Source: Lytechinus pictus
Lineage: Eukaryota
Reading direction: 5' to 3'
Assembly: GCF_037042905.1 (NCBI RefSeq)
Contig: NC_087258.1
Location: 558,001-622,000 of the forward strand
DNA: 64,000 bases
Positions within the stretch are counted from its first letter, which is position 1, and every line of letters starts with the position of its first letter. The position numbers and the translations under genes were made by a program. The notes beneath the pieces are model-generated. The model was given only the letters and a program-made list of their open reading frames with translations. It did not search any database and was not told the DNA's origin. Shown here piece after piece: positions 21,201 through 55,400 of the stretch.

Positions 21201-23247
21201 CGGTAGAGCTTGACCTTCCTGATACTGGTTCCGTTTCTGCAATAGCAGTTGTAGTAACATATGTGGTGCCATCATGGGATGTTGCGACAGCTGATAAAGG
21301 ATTACTGGTTGCTGATCGCGAAGTTGTAGCTATTGTCTGTCGGCTGGTTGTTGGTGGTACTGTCCGAATTCCTACATGACAATTTATAAGAGAGATTGAA
21401 AGAGAGAGATAAATGAGATAGATAGATATATAGATAGATCGATGAACTCTTATGAAACTTGATCTGAATCAGACCCAGACTAGTATAGTTTTTAGATTAA
21501 TTCATTGAACATGGTCATCCCATAATACTCTTTGTGTATACATAATAATGTTAATGTTAAGTATCTTACCAGAACAAGACGGGTTAGCTGAGGTTGGTGG
21601 TGGATTCCAGACGCCATTTTCACAAAATGCCTGATTTGGACCAAGCAAGTCATTAGTTCCATCGACACACTCATACGTCACACCGGAGCCGTGTTCATAA
21701 CTATCCTGATCTGGGTCGTATGTGACGTCATGATATACTCCTGGTCGCTCGCAGTTACCTTTAAGAAAATGGACAGGGAAAGTGAGAGGGGGATAGAGAG
21801 AGTGAGAGTGTGCGAGAGGGGATGGGAGAGAGAGAGAAAGAAAGACGGAAAGAGAGAAGGTTGAGACGCGATTAGAATAGTTAAAACCAGAATAATATAT
21901 TGTAACCTAATATTAGGCAGACATTATTCGATTGACATTCAACTGGGAATAGAGGTTCCCTATTCATGACAAAAATTCACAAAAAAAATAATGAATCGGA
22001 AGAGAGGGCGGATCACCTCAACTAAATCAGTATTGGTAAGTGGAGACCTTCTTCAATTCATCCTCAACTTTTCTTGTTTCATGCTGGCAAATTATCTCTC
22101 AAAATACAAATTACCTAAAACCAAAACAAAACAGGGATGTACATGGAAGAGTGAAAATGAGAGATGCCTTAAGATTGAGAAAAAACAAAACAAAACAAAA
22201 CACAAATAAAAGAAAGTAATAAACAAGGGGAAAAACAAAAAATACAGTAATAAATGAATATGTGTGTACTGCGAATGAAGCATGGGGATATCGCTGTCAT
22301 GTCCGAATACTTCATGTTATTTATATACTCACTGTAACAGATGAGTGGAGATGGCTCCCAGGCTCCGTTCATACACAAACTAGTAGGTGATCCAGCTCCC
22401 GATGAACCGGGTTCACACGTCATTTCTATGGTTGTGAACTCCTCATACTCGGTATAATCGGGAATAAAGTTAGTAGACGCATACTGGTCTTCTGAAGGTT
22501 TCTGGCACACTACAAGACAAATTATTATAATATACATTGATAACCCTTGTTCGGGGACTATAGCAGTCCGTTTCAATGTCAGAAAAAATTGTTAACAATA
22601 TTCACTGTAAAAAAATGAAGCGCTAATTTAGCACTTACACTGCTTGCATAGTGACTGCACTACGAGTGCTGATTTTCTTGTTCAAATTTAAACTAGAAAA
22701 TCAGCACTCGTAGTGCAGTCACTATACAAGCACTGTAATTGCTAAATTAGCACTACATTTTTTACAGTGTAACTTCTTTAGTATAATGTTTTTGTATGTC
22801 CAATCTGTACTNNNNNNNNNNNNNNNNNNNNNNNNNNNNNNNNNNNNNNNNNNNNNNNNNNNNNNNNNNNNNNNNNNNNNNNNNNNNNNNNNNNNNNNNN
22901 NNNNNNNNNNNNNNNNNNNNNNNNNNNNNNNNNNNNNNNNNNNNNNNNNNNNNNNNNNNNNNNNNNTACTTCTGATACGGTCGTCATTGTTTTTATATCA
23001 TTATCACCATCACCACAACTACCACAATCATCATCACCATCATCATCACCACCACCATTCTTGTTATTAGAAATATAATGTTATTCTTATCCTTTTCAAA
23101 ACCTCATTAAGATTTAATAAAAACAACAATTATCATAAAATGCCATTCATTCATTCTGGTACCTGAATAGACTCCAGATGGCCGATGTAAGATAATGATT
23201 CCAAGGACCATGATAGCTGCACGTTTTCTCCACCCGAGATGTGTCAT
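13752..23247 (-). CDS. Gene D: membrane mucin, SP-CCP-CCP-Thr-rich stalk-EGF-SEA-EGF-TM-Tyr-rich tail; about 980 aa
   Basis: Exons 23247-23163, 22509-22333, 21758-21570, 21371-19887, 19661-19548, 17739-17612, 16629-16416, 15942-15796, 14891-14698, 13961-13752. All GT-AG and phase-compatible. Confidence 0.85.
14698..14891 (-). CDS. Gene D exon: TM helix
   Basis: WKLITIVVGSCTGALLLAACVILVCG; phase 1-0; CAG/gtgaat donor. Confidence 0.87.
15290..15670. mobile_element. CGGTTCCATGA-ended repeat carrying a nested MITE (15475-15631)
   Basis: TTTGCTCCGG / GGAGCAAATGTC subrepeats on both sides of the MITE. Confidence 0.65.
15796..15942 (-). CDS. Gene D exon: calcium-binding-type EGF domain
   Basis: TDECKLGLDDCSHHADCKDLAEKSFTCQCWDGYADNSPEGYDGRNCAA; paralogous to the gene A EGF exon. 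Confidence 0.88.
16416..16629 (-). CDS. Gene D exon: SEA second half with FSAGSII motif
   Basis: 214 nt, phase 0-1. Confidence 0.85.
17612..17739 (-). CDS. Gene D exon: SEA first half
   Basis: TTYYTISMTILEIDGDTAIFTSELQSTGSDAFNTLQLTVCTA; 128 nt. Confidence 0.85.
18068..19259. mobile_element. Degenerate foldback/palindromic element in a gene D intron
   Basis: Nested inverted matches, e.g. GCTCGGTTTCCCCATGGA (about 18268) / TCCATGGGGAAACTGAGC (about 18893) and CTTAGAAACACAAAGGGCGCC / GGCGCCCTTCATGTTTCTAAG. Confidence 0.7.
19548..19661 (-). CDS. Gene D exon: short EGF-like domain
   Basis: DPCNGQCEVDREICVDTTCICREGSERPYGESTCE; 6 Cys with CxC; 114 nt. Confidence 0.8.
19887..21371 (-). CDS. Gene D exon: 495-codon Thr/Ser-rich mucin stalk
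   Basis: ORF 19879-21162 extends to acceptor catgtag at 21372; donor gtgagt at 19886. Confidence 0.9.
21570..21758 (-). CDS. Gene D exon: CCP2
   Basis: NCERP...YEHGSGVTYECVDGTNDLLGPNQAFCENGVWNPPPTSANPSCS; 189 nt. Confidence 0.87.
22333..22509 (-). CDS. Gene D exon: CCP1
   Basis: CQKP...YEEFTTIEMTCEPGSSGAGSPTSLCMNGAWEPSPLICY; 177 nt. Confidence 0.87.
22603..22769. mobile_element. Palindromic CACTG-ended MITE (EnSpm/CMC-like)
   Basis: CACTGTAAAAAA...TTTTTTACAGTG; almost fully self-complementary. Confidence 0.8.
22812..22966. other. N run (gap or masked microsatellite)
   Basis: Ns flanked by TACT. Confidence 0.95.
23163..23247 (-). CDS. Gene D exon: signal peptide
   Basis: MTHLGWRKRAAIMVLGIIILHRPSGVYS with n, h and c regions; CAG/gtacca donor, phase 1; acceptor catcgcag at 23277-23278. 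Confidence 0.62.
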
Positions 23248-31248: not shown

Positions 31249-34200
31249 CTGCAGATTTCATATTGAAAAAGATCAGTGAGTGTGAACGTATCTTTGTCAT
31301 CCATGTATTTTGTATGTAAGCATCACAAAATGAAGCAATTACATCAAATCAGTAATTCAAAGAAAGCTTTCGAAAGAAGGATGGCAGGAAAATTGAATCA
31401 CTACAAACTATATACTTGGTATTTTCGTCACCTCTCAGAGTGACTACTGTGACGCATTTTTTTGTTTTCAATAATATAATGCACTGTGAAGGAATACCAC
31501 AATCATTTTCCTGAGCCTGTATACAATTGTATTTCTTTTATTACGAAACGACCTCAAAATTTTCGGTGAAGAGCTTTTTTTTCGGAAATTACTTCTGAGA
31601 GGAGAAATTCAAATACAAACATTAATTGTTTGCATTTTTATTTTTGTAAAATGCATGCATTAGATTAAATCTAATTTAATGAAAATGACAAATTCATTTC
31701 CAACTGCACATTTGCATTATCAAATCTATCCCAAAATACCTACCTCTTCAGCAACTACTCCATCACTTATCGAAACCGGGTTACCATTGACCGATACGAC
31801 AAGCTTATCATTGGTTCGACATGATCTCAAGATGCGTTCACCGCAGCATACGAGAAGGATGACGACGAGGAGAAGAAATGCAACCGCTCCAATCATACTG
31901 TATGCAACAATCTGCCATTTATTTTCTACGGTAATGAAATTAATTGAGAGTTAGTTTTGCTTTAAATGATGCACAAATGACGATAAGCGTAGAATTCAAA
32001 TTTGTAGCACAGTCTATATGACGTCAGCTCATATGGATGAAACCCTCCTCATTATCATATTAAAACCTTTTAGTACCTTTAAAACATCAATCATGATATA
32101 CATTATTTAAGTTTTTGTCAACTGGTTTATGTTCTATCGAAGTAATAGATATTTAATAAAATAATAATGAATTTATTTATTCATTAGGTTAGTCAAGTAT
32201 TCAAAGGCAGCATACAAACGACTTTATCTAGTTAAAAATAAAATTATTTTCCCTTGTGACTTGATTATGCTTGTACGTTTAGTTATTTTACATGTAACAA
32301 TGTTTTTTTTATTTCTATTTCTATGATTTTCTGCAAATTATTTTTTATGGTTTTCAATGCGGTATAAGTGAAATGAAATTAAAAAATTACATGAATCGCT
32401 TCTAAAAAACTTTAAAAAATCGTTTTACCTGGTTCTTTAGGAGTAACCTCTGTTGGCTGTGTTGAAATTGGTATAATAGTTGTGAGCGCACTGATTTCTA
32501 AGAGGAAGAGAAACAATGCAAGATCGAATCAGATTTAATTGAATAATGATAAACGGATTTAATCAGTATAATCATTAAAACAATCTATTTTCATAATTAT
32601 GTAGTTAATACTAATACCTATTGGAGCGACAAATCACATTTTATCTTGCAAAATTATTATCGCATCCCCCATTGCGAATGCTTTGGCCACATAGTTCTCG
32701 TTTCTATTCTAGTTTTCGTTTCCTTTGTCACGTTAAAATAAATGAAATAAAAACAAACCAAAAAATATGTTTCAAATTTAATGTGTGATGTAATACTTTT
32801 TAGTATTTAATTTGCTTATAATTTTTACTATCATTTTTTTATATTTTTACAGTGTAAATGTACATTTCTTAAATACAATTCAAATAAGGGATTCAACGGG
32901 ATGAATTCAGTGTAAAGCATTAACTATTGATGTAGTCCCACAAAATTGTTTTATTGTTTTTATACCAATCCTTACCTGTAATGGAAATAGTGTTTTTATC
33001 GATGGTAAATTCGGTACCATTGGCTTCCAGACTCCCATTACCATTCTCAAGTGTGGTCAGTGTAATATTCAAAAGAGTGGCTTCTGTGACGTCAGATGAT
33101 GGTAAAAACTCAGTGTAGAACCACGCGATAATACTTCCAGATGTGAAGTTGTGCACATTGCATCCTGTGTATCCAGACAGATCTCCATAAACACCAAGAG
33201 CCTGAACATTGATTTCGTGGTCATTTAAAAAGAAATAAATTGATCGCAAACGTAACCGTTCATGTTACCATTTGAAGAGGGAAGTCCCCTCTCTGGAAAC
33301 CCAGATTTTCCTATTTTGGAAAAAGTTTTGATACAGAAAGTTTATTTTATTTAACATTGATACAATTTTGGGTTTATAATCACGAAGGCCACTTGAAAGA
33401 AAGTGTATCTGGATACGTGCTCTAGCTGGACAGCCTATATGTAGCAGAAATGCTGAATATATAGAGTAACATAATTTATGATCATTCTAATGGACATATA
33501 CTTCGAAACAAAAATGTTACGTTCTGAGTGTGAGAAAGGACACGTGGCTTGACTAGTGATGCTGATACTATTCATGGGTGTTGTAGTTGCGTAAAAATTT
33601 AAATTTAAAAAACAAATGTTTAGTTTCTGTTCAGGTTTTGTAACAACTTTGCCAAGTCAAATGCGTGTAAATTTTAACACGTATAGGTGACCTCGAAGGA
33701 CAATCTGGCTCTTATTCTTAAATAAATTGAATACTTAGAGTCATCCACCGTATTCACGGTGCTGACCCGTCACTTGTGGCGAACACTTTTCCTCGCCCAG
33801 GGTCATTGTGAAGAGCGCCATCTAACGAAATATGATTGTGCAGGCCTATCCAAAAGGAAATTAATTCATGTCATTCGAGTTTAAATATTACTTGCATTCT
33901 AATTCATTCAACTTCTTTCCACTAGAGCATACAATAACACTAACCTAATAATCATAATTCATTTTACAGTTTATACATGTATACATTAATCAAACACAAA
34001 CTAACACTTCTTCTTTAAAGGTTGTGATATCTACAAGATGACGTCTCGCCAAGAATTATTTTTTGAAAAGTTGATAATATTGTTGTCACTTGTATTCTCC
34101 GTCTAATGCCTCACTTTTCTCTACTTTGGGTATTCATGGTCAAGTGAACGTTTACTCGTCAAAATGCAGACCTCAACGATTTAAGCAAATAATAAAACAA

Positions 34201-43996: not shown

Positions 43997-44298
43997 TAGA
44001 GAGTTTTCGCATTTACTACGGAGCCGCTCTCTAAAACGCACCAGTTCCTTTGAAAATGCAAGTCAGATCACATTGGAGAGCTGGGAAACTTTTATTGAAA
44101 GTTGGCGGACCGGCGTTATCAGAAGGTTTGCACCGAACAAACAATTTCAAATATATCGTTGTCAGGAGTCAAGACACTACGCTGCTGTTCCCGGTCAACC
44201 AACTTTCGATAAAATCCTCTCCATTGTGATTTGACTTATTTCCAAATGAATTGATGCGTTGTAGAGAGCGGCTCCGTAGTAAATGCGAAAACTCTCTA
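43997..44298. mobile_element. Palindromic MITE with long TIRs
   Basis: TAGAGAGTTTTCGCATTTACTACGGAGCCGCTCTCTA and its exact reverse complement at the other end. Confidence 0.8.
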
Positions 44299-45108
44299 CT
44301 CTCAGTAATGAACACAATGTGTGATATCATCACAGAATAATATATGATATAAGGGATTGGGAGGGAGTGTAGCGACTGAGCAAGAATCAATCTTTAGCAA
44401 TCAGCATACGTGGTGTATGAAACATGACTTTTATGTACGACATTTAAGTGATTAGGTAAGAATGCATTGTGTGAAGTTACAATCTGTATACAGCGAGAGA
44501 GAGAGAGAGAGGAGGGGGGGGGGGAGATGGAGTAACTAGTGAGTAAGAAAAGGTCGGAGATGGGAATAATGCAATATCGGTTACCTTATAACAATATAAT
44601 ACATTGTGTGACAGCAATTGCCTTGGATTGCTTTTCTTGTCAATGATTGAATATGCAATAGTCTACTGATACATGTGTCAAAAGTATATGTAAATGCATG
44701 AATTATTGACAATAAAAATGAGTTACAACAATATCAAGTCAATAATTGAAGCATACTCTAAATGCAAAAGAGCTGATCTAGTCCCGAATCACACTCCTCT
44801 CATAGCATGCATAGTGAGACTGGGTTTGGACTGGGATTGGCATCTTTTGAGAGTGCATGATAGCCCCTTTGGGAGTGAAAATTACTAAACATACACTGTT
44901 CACTCTAACTAGGAGCAGCTATAATGCACTATCAAAAGATGAGTGGCCCTTCGTCTCACCAGATTAGCCCTTCTGCGTTTAGATAAGTTTCAAGTAGCAA
45001 GGCTGTGTTTCCAATATATAATATCGTCCAGAATTTTTACTTTTGACAAAGTAGAAAGCTATTGTGAACCTTTCCCAAATATTGTTAGAATACATCAACG
45101 TGACGCAA

Positions 45109-45311
45109 CTAGGTGCACACAACCTTCCGATCGGGTAGCCATTTTCCTTTAACACATCTCTGCGTGGTTGGTCCAACCAATACCTTTCCAGTAGGACAAG
45201 AGTTACTAATGACGGCATTGAATCGGGAAATCTTCGCATCTCCTTCAACGCTCGTCTTCCGTAGAGGGCGTGACTCGACCAATGCGTCGTGGGCTGGGAG
45301 ATGGCAGTTCT
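45109..45311 (-). CDS. Gene B terminal exon: basic CCP4 plus stop
   Basis: NCHLP...SCPTGKVLVGPTTQRCVKGKWLPDRKVVCT-TAG. Confidence 0.82.
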
Positions 45312-48300
45312 CTGTAATATGAAATATATAGATGTGGAATACATTGGACATTTCATTTCCTGCATCCAAAAAGTACACCCAGTTGTGTTCCTGGAAAGGT
45401 GCCCCCTTCCCGACACCATCTTGATTTCTTATTTTTTGGTTTGCTTAACAAAAAAAAAACTGTTATGCCATCGACCCTTTCCCCTGACGACATTTCCGTA
45501 AGTACGTCAGAAAGGGGACCTCTATGCCTCATTTTCATTATTTAGTGTTGTATTTCGCCTTACATAATAACTTTTTTTGAAAATCTGATATCTAAGAATA
45601 AGCTACTAGAATAAAGGAATTTGCAAAGTTTTAATTAATCTAGCAAGGATAAATTATGAAAAGTTTTCATTTACTGTTTATAGATGAATGGTAAATTATC
45701 TCATAGAACAAAATGTCCTGTGAAAGATCTTATGCAGTAAGATATTTGTATTGTTAAAAGTATAAAATTCTGTTCCATGCATTTCTTGCTTCCCTTTCTC
45801 CTATTAAATGGTGAAATCCAAGTTCTTATGCATAAATCGGGACGAAGGAAAATGTTTTGATTTTTGTACAAATCTTCGTAATCATGTTCATGTACAAGTA
45901 CTAGTTTTAAAAGGAGGGGTGTTCGAAGGGCTATCATTATAAGAGGTTACATCACCGCACGTGTACGTTGCAATACAAGTGATTGAAGTCTAATTTAATA
46001 TTCACAAAGGAGCAATCACATATTGATATAATAGTCACAACTTACAAAATTAAAAACAAATTAACTAATGATGTACATTTCATACTATTTAATTTTCAAC
46101 AAAAAAAACATAGAAATGTTTCACGTATTCCTGTTCCTCCCTATTCACCCAATCATATATTCCAAATCTTACCACGGCACATCATCTTTGTAGGGTCTGG
46201 TATCCACTCGCCGTTCTCTTTACAATAGGTAACGTTTGTTCCTACAGCAGTATACCTGACGTCATCAGAACATGATAAAATCACTTCGTCGTTGGTGGCG
46301 TAGGTCTGCCGATTTGGAGAAAGTTTGATGACCTTTGGATCCGATACAAGAGGAGGTGTACAGTCTGGTTGGGTCATGTGATTAGGAAATAATGTGAGAA
46401 AATATATTACTTTTAATTTGAATATTTTTGTAGAAAGTGCGGTAAACAGAGCTCACTAATATTGACCTGACTCAAATCTTTTTAATCATGATGCAATGAT
46501 GATGATGATAATATTATTATTATTAAAAATAATAACATTTATAATAATGATTACTAGCATGATAATAATTATGATACTTAGGAAATCATAATATCAATAA
46601 AATACTACTACTACTACACATATACTGTACTACTAGTATTAGGCCTAATATTAATAATAATAAAATATCATGTTTTGCAAGTAAAAAAAAATCGCGATTT
46701 ACAATGTTTTATACTTGAAATCATCGTAGTAAAATAATCAGTAATTTAAAGTTGGTCTTAGCACGATGTATAGTAATTGTGACAGAAAAATTGAAAGCGA
46801 TATACACCGTTAAAATGGAAATACAAACCACCTACGATTGCATGAAGGCATTGCTGCAGGTACCCATAATCCATTTTCACACGTTGCTTCATTTGGTCCC
46901 ACGAGGTTAGCACTGATTCCCTCCGCGCATGCGTACTGAATTACATCCTCATGATTATACACAGATTGTGTTGATTCCGAGTCATGACCAAACGGAAAAT
47001 GCACGACATTTGGTCCTACGTCAGGTTCAGCACAATTGGCTTTATTTTGGAAGAAAAATAAATACAAATAAAACTGAATAATTAGAGGGTAGGGGTTTAT
47101 TGAAGGCACTTCCTTTTGCGCGTTCATAGGGTATATTTGGTGACCTAAGAAAGCACTGCTGGGAGTACATCTAATGCTGAATACAAGGGTTATGAAATGG
47201 TGACATTCTTTGACACGATGGCAGATGGATATGTAACAAGGCTTCCATTGCCTCCCCCCCCCCAAAAAAAAAAAAAAAAATCTTCTCTGGATAATGCACA
47301 ATACGTTTTACATATCCTAATCGTAGGCCCATGAATTTGAAACATCACTTCTTTATGACCTCTGTATTGTAGCACACCTCTATTAATAATTATTATTATA
47401 TTAGGCCTATGAATTACTATATGTACACTCGCTAGGGGGAGGTACACATGAAATCATTTAAAAAAATCCAACAAACAAGAAATAATCTCAGAAAATAAAG
47501 AGGCAGAACATTATAAAACATATTTGAAACATATGAAGAACTGTCTCCAAGACTGACAAAATATGGGCTAAGGGTTGATGGAAAAACCAGTCGAATTGTT
47601 CTACCCATTAAAAATATGTTCTGGGCTGAGAATATTTATACATGTACCTAAATAAAATTAGTAAAATTCACAGGGCAAAATGCTGAAAATCTAAGAAAAA
47701 TCGGATAACAAATAACGTCATTGAATTCTAAAGATTTGCATTATTCCGGTGAAACAGTTCTAGACATGTCTTCATAAATATTCATTACGTGGGCTGATGA
47801 TGTCACATTCCCACTTTCCTTTTGTCTATGTTATAACATGAAATAATAATTGTTTCATTTTCATAAAATAATGTGTAAATGATGTGTCTCCATTATTATG
47901 ATATAAGTTGCAGCAAGAAATAATTAACATGACTAATGCACTTAATCAGTTATCAATCCAATTATTGAAGTTCTATGTAGAAAATTTTTAATAAACCTAT
48001 CGAATTTCATATGTAGAAATACAAAACAACAAGTTCGTTATCCGATTTTCATCAAATTTTTAGCATTTTTTCCTTGTGAATTTTACTCTATTTTTTTTAA
48101 ATATAAATGTATTCAGCCCGGAGCATCCTTTTATGGCACTCCTAGTGTTTGATTTAGATTTTGCAGGGTTTAACAAAACTTCATTCATTGGCGTGATCAT
48201 ATCATCTATAATCGACATGTACTTTCCTTACCCATACATATGGCATTATCTGGACTTGGGTCCCATACACCACCTTCCATACAGTACGAGTATTGACTTC

Positions 48301-49765
48301 CAACGTGACTGTATCCACCATCACATGAGAATGTGATTTTTGACCAAAGCGGGTAAGATGTTTCGCTGGGAGAAGTGATGACGTTGGATAACGTTACTGG
48401 TAGTCCACATTCTGAAAAAGGCAATTTCAAAATTAGGAAGTAAAAAGTTACATTTTATCCTTTCCACATTTTGCAGGAAATTGTAAAGAAAACAGGTAAC
48501 CACTTCAAACAAGGTTCTACTACATACGTGCTGCGCTAATGTATTTTTTTAAGAAGAGGCGGGAGGGGGGGGGGGGTAGAGGCTGCACGCCAACCTAAAC
48601 TTTATGTTTAAATATTTATATCTCTCTCAAAATGTATCTAACATAAAAATCCAGAGGTCTCTGCTGCTGCTACTACTGATATGACTAACGTTCTAATTCT
48701 ATCATCAAACAAATTTGTTCATTTCATTGTAACCTGTCATTTAAATACCAATAAGTTGTCAGGGAATGGTTTCTGTCAAGTTTGCCGTCAAAACAATGGA
48801 ATACCTTTGATTCAACTTTAGCGAGTAAAATGTTATCAGGGACCTTCCAGGTAAGGTTTAACTTAAATTATCAAGAATCATAGTGTTTCATAAACTTTCA
48901 AAAAAAGTTTATTTCAGTAAAGCTTTTGTTCATGGACCCGGGTTCGGTGTTAATTGTGTTAAAAGGATCTGAATTTTAATGAGCAGAGAAAACAATTCTT
49001 TCATGGGCAAATAATATACAAACGAAATGAGTTAAGAAGAATTATGAAAATCCTTAATAAACAAATAAAAATTATCCTGATGTAACAAAAATATTATATC
49101 ATTGCAATTATTGAGACGAACTGCTTTCTTCCTGCATGTCCTATAACATGTGGAAAGACATTTTTGTTTAGTTTGTACTGATTATGTGTAAGATAAGATG
49201 GTACTTCTGTACTACGCCAAAGAATTTCACCTTATTCCACCCAATTATGTCCCTCTCCCCTTAACAAATTCTATATATATATAAAAAACCACATACATTC
49301 GGGAAAAATAATGAATAAAATAGGCATCGTTACATTGTTACTCATATAATATCGCCATGACAAATCTGTAGAAAATGAACATTGATTTGATTGGAAGCAT
49401 TAATTTAAATGTTATTCATGCGGATGTTTTAGGACAATAGTGAACAGTAACCCTTTGCTCAGTATACATTGTCATTTTCAATTATCGAATATATTGATAA
49501 TACCAGGGTATGGAAAGCCTGTGAATGAAACTTGGTCAATTTAGATTTTAAAAAATGAAGAAGCCCATGTGTAAAGGCATTTGCAATACTACCCCAAGCA
49601 AGCAAAATTATCGTGTTTGAATCAAGTACAGACTACATTCTACGGGATATTTTTATTTTTTTAAATAAATACAACCAATTATAGATTCGCAAAGTTCTTA
49701 CCTGGTACAGGCGATCCCAAAGCGATTGAAAGAGTGAAGAATGTGATAAATAGATTGAGCTCCAT
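45109..49765 (-). CDS. Gene B: secreted protein of signal peptide plus four Sushi/CCP domains, 280 aa
   Basis: Exons 49765-49702, 48411-48232, 47039-46836, 46364-46173, 45311-45109. ACCATGG start context; TAG follows one residue after the last Cys; no TM or GPI segment. Confidence 0.8.
46173..46364 (-). CDS. Gene B exon: CCP3
   Basis: CTPP...YATNDEVILSCSDDVRYTAVGTNVTYCKENGEWIPDPTKMMCR; 192 nt. Confidence 0.85.
46836..47039 (-). CDS. Gene B exon: CCP2
   Basis: NCAEP...YNHEDVIQYACAEGISANLVGPNEATCENGLWVPAAMPSCN; 204 nt. Confidence 0.88.
47608..48133. mobile_element. Degenerate TTAA-type non-autonomous element
   Basis: Ends ATGTTCTGGGCTGA / TCAGCCCGGAGCAT; body resembles the 11 kb family. Confidence 0.5.
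48232..48411 (-). CDS. Gene B exon: CCP1
   Basis: ECGLP...YPLWSKITFSCDGGYSHVGSQYSYCMEGGVWDPSPDNAICM; 180 nt. Confidence 0.88.
49702..49765 (-). CDS. Gene B exon: signal peptide
   Basis: MELNLFITFFTLSIALGSPVP; donor CAG/gtaaga; phase 1. Confidence 0.75.
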
Positions 49766-50536
49766 GGTAGATGACAAAACCTGTATTATTGCATTGATAT
49801 TCGCAAAATGAAATTATTGTCTGATTGATGTTTTTCCTGACTCAGAGTCAGGTCAAAGGGCGAATATAGCCGGATGCATTTTTATGTTCGTATTGGTATT
49901 TGTATCGGCATAGATAATAATAACAGAAAAAGACGCAGTATTATACTATGGAACGGGCGAGGTATTTAATGGCAAGATTAATGGTTAACGCGACTACAAA
50001 CAAAACAAGAGAGAAGTTATGCATGCCCTGATCAAAGATCAACATGGTCACCCCAAAGTGTGGATTAATTGAAGATACTTGTTTGCTCTATGACGAGAAA
50101 ATACGCAAATCTACTTAACCATTTACCCAACCCTAATTTGTTAGAAACAATGGAGAGACTTTGATTTTTATTTAATACGTGTCGTAAACGTAGTAAAAAT
50201 CAATATTAACACTGAAATCACTGAATGATTTGGGAGCCATATCATATTTTTAGTGGAAAATGTTGTACATACACAAGTGTACACCTATTTTCTATTTCTG
50301 ATATTAATAGATAACCATCATTCGGGAAGGAAGACCTTTTAGTTTCATTTGCATTTTTTAAAAGAAACTCCCCCACCCCCTCGGAAAATCATGGATCAGC
50401 CTCTGAAATACAATGACGTACAGAGCCTATCGAAAGCAAGCGGTAGAAAGTATACGAATAGGACCACAAACTTTTAAAACAAATGATATATGATTTTAAT
50501 AATCTGACAAACGGAATACATTTGACAAGAATGACG

Positions 50537-52431: not shown

Positions 52432-55400
52432 CTAAATGAAGAAAGAATGCAGAGGAAAGTAGAGAGTGGGCAGGGAAGGGGAATAAAACGGTAGCAATTA
52501 CATCATTAATCATGTTTTTGAAAAATTATAACATCAACAATTTCACTAATGATATTAATAAAAAAAATATAAAATTAACAAAAAAGCACTATTCATACTA
52601 CTACTACTANNNNNNNNNNNNNNNNNNNNNNNNNNNNNNNNNNNNNNNNNNNNNNNNNNNNNNNNNNNNNNNNNNNNNNNNNNNNNNNNNNNNNNNNNNN
52701 NNNNNNNNNNNNNNNNNNNNNNNNNNNNNNNNNNNNNNNNNNNNNTACTACTAATACTACTACAAATTATAACAACAATAATAATAATAATATGAATGTC
52801 TTTTATTACTTTCCCCAATATTAATGATCAAAGGATTTCGTATGCTTAATTACTTGACATTAAATATTTTACAACGTTTGGTTTAGTGAGCCCAAACTGC
52901 AGTTTTTACCTTTTCCTTGTTATCTTTTGGTACAACTATCGTATCTTCTGGGTGTGTTATCTTTCTTCTGCTTGTTTTCCTGATTACACAGAAAAGTGAC
53001 ACTAGCAGAATAATAATGATAGCGCCACCAACCGCCGAAACAGCTATTAAAATCCATGTTGCTGAAAGAAATGACAATGGGCAACCAGAAATTCAAATAA
53101 GTAAAACAAAAGAGACTATACGAAGTGATATTAGACAATAAAATGTCGAATGATAGAAATAATCCGTGGACAAGGTTTTTTTTCCTTTTTTTTTTGTTAT
53201 CTTGTTTTACAGGTGTTAAACTGCCTAGTTCTTATCATTTCAATACCCCATGCTCTTTTACTAAATCTTGTAACGATGATTTTGTAGATACACGTATTTA
53301 CGTTTTGACTGAAAGTCATGCATATCTTGTGACTTTAGGCTTTAAGCTTTTTATGATTTTTTAAGGTAAAGAGATCTTTTAAACCTTACATGCTTTTAGC
53401 TAAAGGATTAATCAGCGTAAGAGTTGTTTTAGGATGAATGGATAGAATAAATTCTTTGCTGATTTCGGTATTTCTCTTTTTTTAATATAAGCGAGTATTA
53501 CCTATAGTTGGAGTGTTTCTATTCGCCTCTTCGCTAGTCGTTGGAGTTGTAGCCGTTATAATTTCTAAACAAATCAAAATATAATAAAAGGAAATATAAA
53601 AAATACATCGAAATCTGAAATTACTTTAAATAGGACATAATCTCATATTTCACCTTTGATAACACGTAATCTTTGGAATGAGTCCCTCAGGGAGGATTGA
53701 GTTTAAAGAACGGTTTGAATAAAATGTGATATTCTTGAAGTATAATGATTGATATGCATTATACTCCAGAAGGCCTGCTGAAATCGGTTTTTTTTCTTTC
53801 AGAGTTGAATTGGTCATATTAAAAAGCAAACTTATCGATTGAATAAAAAACAGTGGAAATATCAGAATAGTTTTTCAATTATTTCAAGAGGAACAAAAAG
53901 TACAGTAATGGTGTATTCGTTAAAAAGACTCAAATGTAACCATTTTCATGTGACAGACATACATTCAATACGAGTCATCTTAGTATGTATAAGTAATAAC
54001 AGTAATAAGATGAAGTGAAATGCATATTTTATTGTTTTAGGACATACCTATCGTACACAGCAAACCAGGTGTGATAGACGTTGAACTATACCCTTCGATA
54101 CATGTGCAGTTAAAGCCACCCTCGTCCAGATCAGAACATGTCGCAAACGGAGAACAATCATCTATTCCTAATGAGCATTCGTTCGTTGCTGAATGATAGA
54201 AAATCAATGGCAAAACATGATAATAGAAGTTAACAATTAATAATCAATTACGAATAAAGAAATTTCCATGGAAAATATTGGGGGCGTCTTGGTCTAGTGG
54301 TCAAGACTCTCGTCCTTTAATCTGATGGACTTGGGTTCGATTCCAAACCATGACGTGTTTTCCTTCAGCAAGAAATTTGCCCACATTGTGCTGCACTCAA
54401 GCCAGGTGAGATAAATGGGTACCGGCAGGAAGTAATTCCTAAAATAATCTGTGCGCACCGGAATTGATAGACTACATGTAGCTTAGCTGGGGTAATATAG
54501 GAACGCCTTGAGCACATATCAAGGTGGATACGTGCGCAATACAAGTCATATATAATTTATTATCATTGAAACTCGTTGTGAATAAATAATATATGATTCA
54601 AATGAGTTATACTTACGATGACATTAAAATCGGCATGGGAATGACAGTTTAAGACATGCCGATTTTAATGTCATCGTAAGTATAACTCATTTTATTATCA
54701 AGGTTTATAGAAACAATATCAATAATATCATAAGGGGATTTCTGGCTTAGAAATGTTTATTTATTTTGGATTGGATGTGCCAAGAAATTCGGTGAATTAT
54801 TTGTTTGAGGGTGCTATATCCTTGGCCAGGCTATTTCCGAGCAATAACTCATTAATTATCAAAATCGTTTTAATTATCATATCCATCGTGTTCATATACT
54901 TACGTTCAACAACGATGGAACTTGCGTCTAGCGTATATGAGGAGTTATTGTTGATTATGAATCTATTGGATTCCGTGACATTATTAATATGATTTGACAG
55001 ACTATCATTGGTGACGGGCGAGCTTTGTTCAAAGTAAACCACAGATATAGTGATAATGCTTCCAGACTGGAAAGAGAATACTTCTGATCCAAGAAAGCTC
55101 GTCATCCCCTCAAACACAGAATTTATCTGAATACAGACAAGATGATGAAGCATTTTACAAAAGCAATTCAAATGTTGAATACTAATGATAATGATGTTCA
55201 GATGTTTACGAGGGATCGATTGAATTCACAATTATTTTCGGCGAACATTCTCCTATAATGCTCACATTTCTTTTAAAAGGATCGTAAAATTCTATTGATT
55301 GCAAAATTACTGATATCCCACCTTACCGACTTGACAAGATCTGTTTGAAGAAGTTGATAGGCTGAACTCTCTTTATCGCGAAGGTCGTTGGTGTAAAGGG

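Follow-up and report, generated by a model that had tools for sequence, protein, structure and literature searches.

A 64,000-nucleotide stretch of Lytechinus pictus DNA (NCBI RefSeq assembly GCF_037042905.1, contig NC_087258.1, positions 558,001 to 622,000 of the forward strand), here called the window, contains a five-exon gene on the minus strand at 49765-45109. The product of this gene, termed gene B, is 280 amino acids long and consists of a signal peptide and four complement control protein (CCP, or sushi) modules and nothing else. The modules alternate between two types, designated odd and even, in the order odd-even-odd-even. Gene B is a euechinoid gene in its own right, spliced and expressed, and the account of its anatomy and history given here is held with high confidence. 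It would have originated from a two-exon cassette of one odd and one even CCP, the same cassette that supplies the N-terminal head of the neighbouring single-pass mucins.

The five-exon model was reproduced by one spliced RNA contig of 1497 nt from RNA run X1 (depth 33.7), in which all four exon joints were present. These joints skip 1290, 1192, 471 and 861 nt, each with GT..AG borders in the direction of transcription (CT..AC on the plus strand). Every intron is in phase 1 and every exon border is AG/GT. The spliced frame comprises 843 nt, or 280 codons, and terminates at a TAG one codon past the last cysteine. No depth was seen in the introns of gene B except at repeats, indicating that X1 represents spliced RNA. 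Contig and genome disagree at 7 coding positions; 5 of the differences are synonymous and 2 conservative (D184N and R186K).

Exon 1 (49702..49895, minus strand, as are all exons of the gene) is delimited by the joint 48411/49702 in the contig and contains at least 130 nt of 5' untranslated region (UTR), the signal peptide MELNLFITFFTLSIALGSPVP with its ATG at 49765-49763, and one nucleotide of the next codon before a phase-1 donor. The 5' end of the contig is not necessarily the transcription start. Two very short upstream open reading frames, of 8 and 2 codons, are present in the 5'UTR (49766-49895). Each of the following four exons encodes one Cys-x-Cys-x-Cys-x-Trp-x-Cys module, and single exons were scored against Pfam Sushi (PF00084; gathering cut-off 20.7 bits). 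Exon 2 (48232..48411) encodes CCP1, an odd-type module covering residues 22-81 with Cys I to Cys IV at 48409-48236, and is supported by its Pfam match (E 6e-8, 33.4 bits), its joints and its place in the odd clade described below. Exon 3 (46836..47039) encodes CCP2, an even-type module in which the loop from Cys I to Cys II is long (Cys I to Cys IV at 47034-46840; 24.8 bits; joints). Exon 4 (46173..46364) encodes the odd-type CCP3 (Cys I to Cys IV at 46362-46177; 24.9 bits), which falls in a clade of B3 modules from four species. The coding part of exon 5 (45109..45311) specifies CCP4, with Cys I to Cys IV at 45306-45115, a single threonine and the TAG at 45111-45109. CCP4 gave no Pfam match and was identified by hhalign, by its B4 clade and by a structural model. 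Its profile aligned over the full length with the even-type profile (hhalign 96.8%, E 2e-10) and only partially with the odd-type profile (75.9%), and on this profile comparison CCP4 is classed as a divergent even type.

Downstream of the stop, the contig continues through 524 nt of 3'UTR (44585..45108; contig piece 44585-45311) and breaks just short of a simple repeat. The 3'UTR is probably about 1 kb long, with a probable further part at 44091..44584, because X1 contigs at a similar depth (26-38) cover 44100-44482 and the first canonical AATAAA lies at 44096-44091, 1012 nt past the stop; neither AATAAA nor ATTAAA occurs between 45108 and 44097. At 44100-44300 an X1 contig showed an 'opposite strands' joint and reads from three further RNA runs (X5-X7) continue into unlike sequence, so that this segment is probably another repeat in or just past the 3'UTR.

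Gene B sits between two same-strand genes with related exons, genes A and C, as might also be expected if its exons were alternatives used by A or C, or belonged to a duplicate in decay. There is practically no likelihood that B is anything but a separate gene: one contig holds its own signal-peptide exon, stop and 3'UTR, no read or joint in the X1 contig links it to gene C or gene A, six orthologues keep the reading frame intact, and the ratio of non-synonymous to synonymous substitution rates (dN/dS) is well below 1. The candidate was rejected on the RNA contig, the dN/dS values and the orthologue frames. A reading made earlier from the sequence alone had proposed gene B as a soluble, doubled version of the mucin head, and the items it described were present where it had placed them. 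Its description of a separate secreted four-CCP gene that stops after CCP4, with no stalk or anchor, was borne out by the transcript: the protein ends ...VVCT, with neither a Ser/Thr-rich region nor a hydrophobic tail. The same reading had named two outcomes that would speak against it, namely transcripts always spliced into gene C, or lack of expression together with dN/dS near 1. The transcript instead has its own stop and 3'UTR, and the gene is expressed in X1 with dN/dS of 0.3-0.4. The roles that it suggested for the protein (decoy, bivalent cross-linker or fluid-phase partner of the membrane forms, with poxvirus VCP as the parallel) are conjectural.

The spliced product was identical over 280 amino acids to RefSeq protein XP_054768721.2 (Lytechinus; P0156). 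Orthologues include the Lytechinus proteins XP_041479974.1 and XP_041479953.1 (280 amino acids), XP_003730753.2 of S. purpuratus (279 amino acids), XP_071505057.1 of Diadema antillarum (277 amino acids, with four stretches matched to the even-type CCP profile) and XP_072174500.1 of Diadema setosum; the searches also gave a Logan RNA contig from SRR31798689. In six orthologues (P0157/P0158, P0152, P0154, P0017 and P0151) the frame is intact, the length is 277-280 amino acids and the protein ends one residue past Cys IV of CCP4. Exon sizes across four species were 64, 180, 204 (198 in Diadema), 192 and 200-203 nt. An exhaustive search with the even-type CCP profile was swamped by long multi-CCP proteins and yielded few useful full-length matches, and a profile search restricted to proteins of 0.55-1.75 times the length returned no orthologue outside euechinoids, a blank that says little given the word and length limits of the search. 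Comparison of the window with S. purpuratus gave dN/dS of 0.29-0.34 (dS 0.7-0.8), and with L. variegatus 0.38-0.42 (dS 0.11-0.12); each single CCP, compared with S. purpuratus, gave 0.22-0.46. By these measures the protein appears fairly fast-evolving yet clearly constrained.

Module relationships were assessed by pairwise z-scores against shuffles in which cysteines and tryptophan were held in place. B-CCP2 and C-CCP2 (B2 and C2; modules are numbered in this way throughout) were 43% identical with z = 12.3, as the sequence-only reading had noted in calling them close, and C2 was the nearest relative of B2 in the whole 812-Mb genome. The proposed resemblance of B1 and B3 to C1 likewise held up, with z of 7.2 and 8.4; B2-D2 scored 9.1 (D being a further mucin gene) and B1-B3 scored 6.4, and pairs of unlike type mostly scored 1-4. 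The likeness within B2-C2, B1-C1, B3-C1 and B1-B3 is thus, on these scores, well beyond the shared CCP scaffold. The best pairwise z of CCP4 was only 3.7-4.6. A maximum-likelihood tree of 30 modules comprised B1-B4 and C1-C2 of four species, the D pair of the window and the four D-type modules of Diadema protein XP_071494366.1; the long-branch module A1 was left out. One branch separated all 15 odd from all 15 even modules (support 88/100, present in 92% of bootstrap trees), and none of 500 label shuffles was as clustered. The odd and even clades that had been predicted for the CCP exons were therefore found, and the modules of gene B alternate between the same two types as the heads of C and D, as expected of a doubled mucin head. 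B2 and B4 formed a group (84/85) with C2 as its sister (95/88). The B3 clade (100/97) and the B4 clade (100/100) each include all four species, indicating that the doubling is older than the split between Diadema and camarodonts and not recent. That split dates back on the order of 200 million years or more.

The linkers between modules bear on how the doubling came about. Those of CCP1-2, CCP2-3 and CCP3-4 are 3, 2 and 3 residues long, reading MAN/NH/REN, LAQ/NH/HEN and LAQ/HE/HDN across the six orthologues; the two-residue linker between CCP2 and CCP3 is NH, or HE in Diadema. Among 1285 junctions between CCPs of 147 other multi-CCP proteins, only 3 have a two-residue linker; four residues was the most common length (53%). 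Odd exons begin two nucleotides before the Cys I codon, and past Cys IV an even exon extends by one codon and one nucleotide; an even exon joined to an odd one therefore yields a two-residue linker. Every module being a single exon with phase-1 borders, a tandem copy of the cassette would stay in frame, and the end of its even exon joined to the start of the next odd exon would give exactly the linker seen between CCP2 and CCP3. The stop of gene B is the second codon past Cys IV in four species, a position that coincides exactly with the phase-1 donor of the other even exons compared (C, D and B2). Truncation would have placed a stop one codon past Cys IV, at the site that serves as a donor in other even exons.

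A doubled head of a second kind was found in Diadema antillarum XP_071494366.1 (P0041). Like gene B, this protein has a doubled odd-even cassette of four CCPs whose linkers measure 3, 2 and 3 residues, SV being the one between the pairs; unlike gene B, its cassette belongs to the D type and a Ser/Thr-rich stalk still carries the doubled head. Doubling and release from the stalk are therefore separate steps. For gene B both steps would have occurred before Diadema and camarodonts diverged, and the gene would have remained beside a C-type gene ever since. The locus would neatly illustrate how exons with symmetric phase-1 borders let a cassette of two modules double and then come off its stalk.

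Conserved gene order is consistent with this history. As in the window, gene B of S. purpuratus, L. variegatus and Diadema is followed on its own strand by a C-type CCP pair. In S. purpuratus a SEA-domain gene, B and an 835-residue C orthologue (XP_030843430.1, a CCP pair followed by a Ser/Thr-rich region) follow one another on one strand, and in Diadema the distance from B to the C-type pair downstream is 7.5 kb. B and C have therefore been neighbours for as long as gene B has existed. On L. variegatus CM031028.1 the block of mucin, B and C occurs twice, at 4.03 and 5.46 Mb, 1.4 Mb apart, and the two copies of B differ at 18 nt and 5 amino acids; this is either a retained haplotype or a recent segmental duplication.

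The product of gene B may be a soluble protein that recognises the class of ligand bound by the mucin heads; in the fluid phase it would then act as their competitor or supplement. This is the preferred reading of its function, put forward tentatively and at somewhat less than an even chance, because no pair in the genome is more closely related to the C head than B1-B2, the gene has kept its place beside a C-type gene, and its modules are under constraint. The combined explanation, in which an independent gene of cassette origin encodes such a binder, is given about an even chance of being correct.

Several observations weigh against this account. Tests of alternative topologies (approximately unbiased, AU) left the order among B1, B3 and C1 undecided (p 0.35-0.49, in the domain trees and in a tree of pair units), so that a second pair copied inside B cannot be distinguished from one taken over from a different gene. 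The B3-B4 pair has diverged strongly from all mucin heads (branch length 2.2), and its specificity may differ from theirs. In addition, three raw RNA runs from the same species (X5-X7, about 6% of each read) gave zero reads on the exons of gene B; expression is sample-specific at most, on in one study and off in another. The divergence of B3-B4 and the uneven expression would also suit a protein unrelated in function to its neighbours, a CCP scaffold or carrier like LEV-9, Hikaru genki, beta2-glycoprotein I (beta2-GPI) or factor XIII B, to which only ancestry would link the mucin heads. The split from C, which is older than the divergence of Diadema and camarodonts, fits such a role, as does the top structural match, to beta2-GPI. 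Against it, B1-B2 is still the nearest relative of the C head and nothing indicates a particular alternative partner, and the idea is regarded as possible but doubtful.

Structural comparison placed the product among multi-CCP proteins. The mature protein is about 28 kDa and acidic (pI 5.1; range 4.4-5.1). All seven sequences, the gene B product and its six orthologues, contain 16 cysteines in the mature part, and the Cys/Trp columns are invariant in a 70-row alignment of orthologues and four-CCP windows of other, non-orthologous proteins. An AlphaFold2 model based on this alignment was all-beta with four modules and a mean pLDDT of 91.3, the only soft spot being the loop between Cys I and Cys II of CCP4; with an alignment of four orthologues alone, pLDDT was 29. 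Angles between modules in the model are unreliable because the alignment was built from non-orthologous four-CCP windows. Foldseek matched multi-CCP proteins only, with beta2-GPI at the top and a probability of 1.00 over about 270 columns for beta2-GPI, CD46, Crry, factor H CCP1-4, DAF and SPICE; global TM-scores were low because inter-module angles differ.

Among these matches are regulators of complement activation (RCA), and gene B might be thought a fluid-phase regulator of sea urchin C3, like factor H, C4BP or poxvirus VCP/SPICE, with the mucins as membrane counterparts like DAF and MCP, whose CCPs stand on a Ser/Thr-rich stalk, and the locus as an echinoid analogue of the vertebrate RCA cluster. 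Gene B resembles the RCA regulators (factor H CCP1-4, DAF, MCP, Crry and VCP/SPICE) in its string of four contiguous CCPs, for which the RCA-type minimum is three, in its secretion, in having one exon per module with phase-1 introns, and in fold; both loci hold soluble and stalk-anchored relatives in a tandem cluster. Sea urchins possess C3, according to background cited in PMC6683126. All PDB sequence and fold matches were complement receptors or regulators, beta2-GPI or factor XIII B, but these dominate the solved CCP structures, and PDB searches return every sort of CCP protein without discriminating among functions; Sushi domains are moreover common in many non-complement proteins. Identity to any solved complement regulator is only about 20%.

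The linkers set gene B further apart from these regulators. In Ojha et al. 2019 (PMC6683126), the regulator signature is an ordered series of five motifs, M5-M3-M1-M2-M4, of which the linker-spanning M3 and M2 have Cys-x4-Cys, the cysteines being at 3/8 in M3 and 8/13 in M2. Basic linker residues are required for activity, according to Lys/Arg mutants of DAF, CR1, C4BP, SPICE and Kaposica (supplementary data 2). RCA regulators thus have four-residue linkers with required basic residues, whereas those of gene B read Cys-x3-Cys, Cys-x2-Cys and Cys-x3-Cys, carry no basic cluster in the six orthologues and do not match the linker element of M3 or M2. The mature protein is acidic, and the positive charge on CCP4 is not conserved. 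The mismatch in the linkers and the acidic pI lower the case for an RCA-type regulator, which is considered unlikely. It is similarly a long shot that the locus is an independently arisen echinoid counterpart of the vertebrate RCA cluster, in which the mucins would shield epithelia from the animal's own C3 and B would act as a soluble regulator or de-regulator with a tight-linker geometry outside the vertebrate and viral motif signature. The control of invertebrate complement on self surfaces is poorly known, and the conserved pairing of B with CCP-tipped mucins offers a candidate set in Lytechinus pictus.

Some CCP proteins, such as CFHR1, CFHR2 and CFHR5, dimerise through CCP pairs. By the same principle gene B might bind the CCP heads of the membrane mucins themselves, its two pairs bridging or capping them as a bivalent cross-linker or partner that organises the glycocalyx. 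Two copies of the head cassette per chain, separated by a tight two-residue junction, and the C-type adjacency conserved in four species are compatible with such a role, but the adjacency may equally be a remnant of tandem duplication, and the proposal is judged improbable. CFHR1-5 are small secreted CCP-only proteins that arose by exon duplication from a larger CCP neighbour and are thought to compete with it. Their likeness to gene B is one of analogy only, the sequence relationship being limited to the domain; B is not a recent duplicate but hundreds of millions of years old, and its neighbours are mucins and not a soluble regulator.

Another sea urchin protein with four CCPs, SpCRS, also has a FIMAC/Kazal domain, as described in bioRxiv 10.1101/2022.04.21.489004 citing Multerer and Smith 2004. 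Gene B has four CCPs as well but nothing past CCP4: no FIMAC/Kazal domain of the SpCRS/SpCRL kind was found, Sushi being the only domain above the Pfam cut-off in orthologues P0152 and P0017. Gene B is already modelled in RefSeq for five species, as an uncharacterised member of the secreted multi-CCP kind, and the names of these models (SVEP1-like, coagulation factor XIII B chain-like and CFHR5-like) are borrowed pipeline labels without functional meaning. A literature search with five accessions (four RefSeq proteins and SRR31798689; XP_041479974.1 and XP_041479953.1 were not among them) returned no paper mentioning any of them, and no paper on sushi-headed sea urchin mucins was found. As an annotation, gene B is a well-supported but ordinary predicted sushi-domain gene with an unusually tight middle linker.

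The neighbours were confirmed as Ser/Thr-rich single-pass membrane proteins, as had been proposed, with Ser/Thr-rich exons of 427-1310 amino acids in A, C and D and transmembrane exons in A and C. Gene C (minus strand) has a CCP pair at 39544-39365 and 38784-38587, a Ser/Thr-rich exon of more than 667 amino acids and a transmembrane exon at 31911-31840. Gene A (minus strand) has a mucin exon of 1310 amino acids and a transmembrane exon at 53062-52982, and gene D has a CCP pair and a Ser/Thr-rich exon of 427 amino acids. Gene B lacks the stalk, SEA module and transmembrane segment that mark SEA-type membrane mucins, the kind to which these neighbours are compared, and has only the head in common with them. 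Nine CCP exons had been counted in the window; eight of them fit the Cys/Trp pattern, and the ninth (62381-62196, minus strand), the head of gene A, lacks the conserved tryptophan, has no Pfam match and forms a very long branch. Gene A therefore appears to bear one aberrant CCP and not a pair. Each of the transmembrane exons of C and A (31840-31911 and 52982-53062, minus strand) is followed by basic residues, and the exons upstream of them (32920-33249 and 54797-55171, minus strand) carry G-S-I-I, a motif resembling the cleavage site of SEA modules. Scored singly, neither of these two exons gave a Pfam SEA match; a precomputed SEA annotation is present on the gene upstream of B in S. purpuratus and L. 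variegatus.

The DNA of the window is AT-rich, with runs of N at 22812-22966 and 52610-52745. Intron 2 of gene B contains, at 47628-48019, an interspersed repeat of about 310 bp, for which a first look gave 2630 candidates in the genome. Scored copies were 81-86% identical, most of them 83-85%, and some lie in inverted pairs. RNA contig depth over this repeat reached 16,900, and reads of all RNA runs lay only partly on it; scans of 44000-50500 with Rfam and for tRNAs gave no match, the intron 2 repeat included. Beyond the end of the window, even-type CCP exons were located at 642133, 689509, 692829, 697452, 699850 and 735268 in the 640-735 kb region of the same contig, indicating that the cluster of CCP-bearing mucins reaches well past the window.

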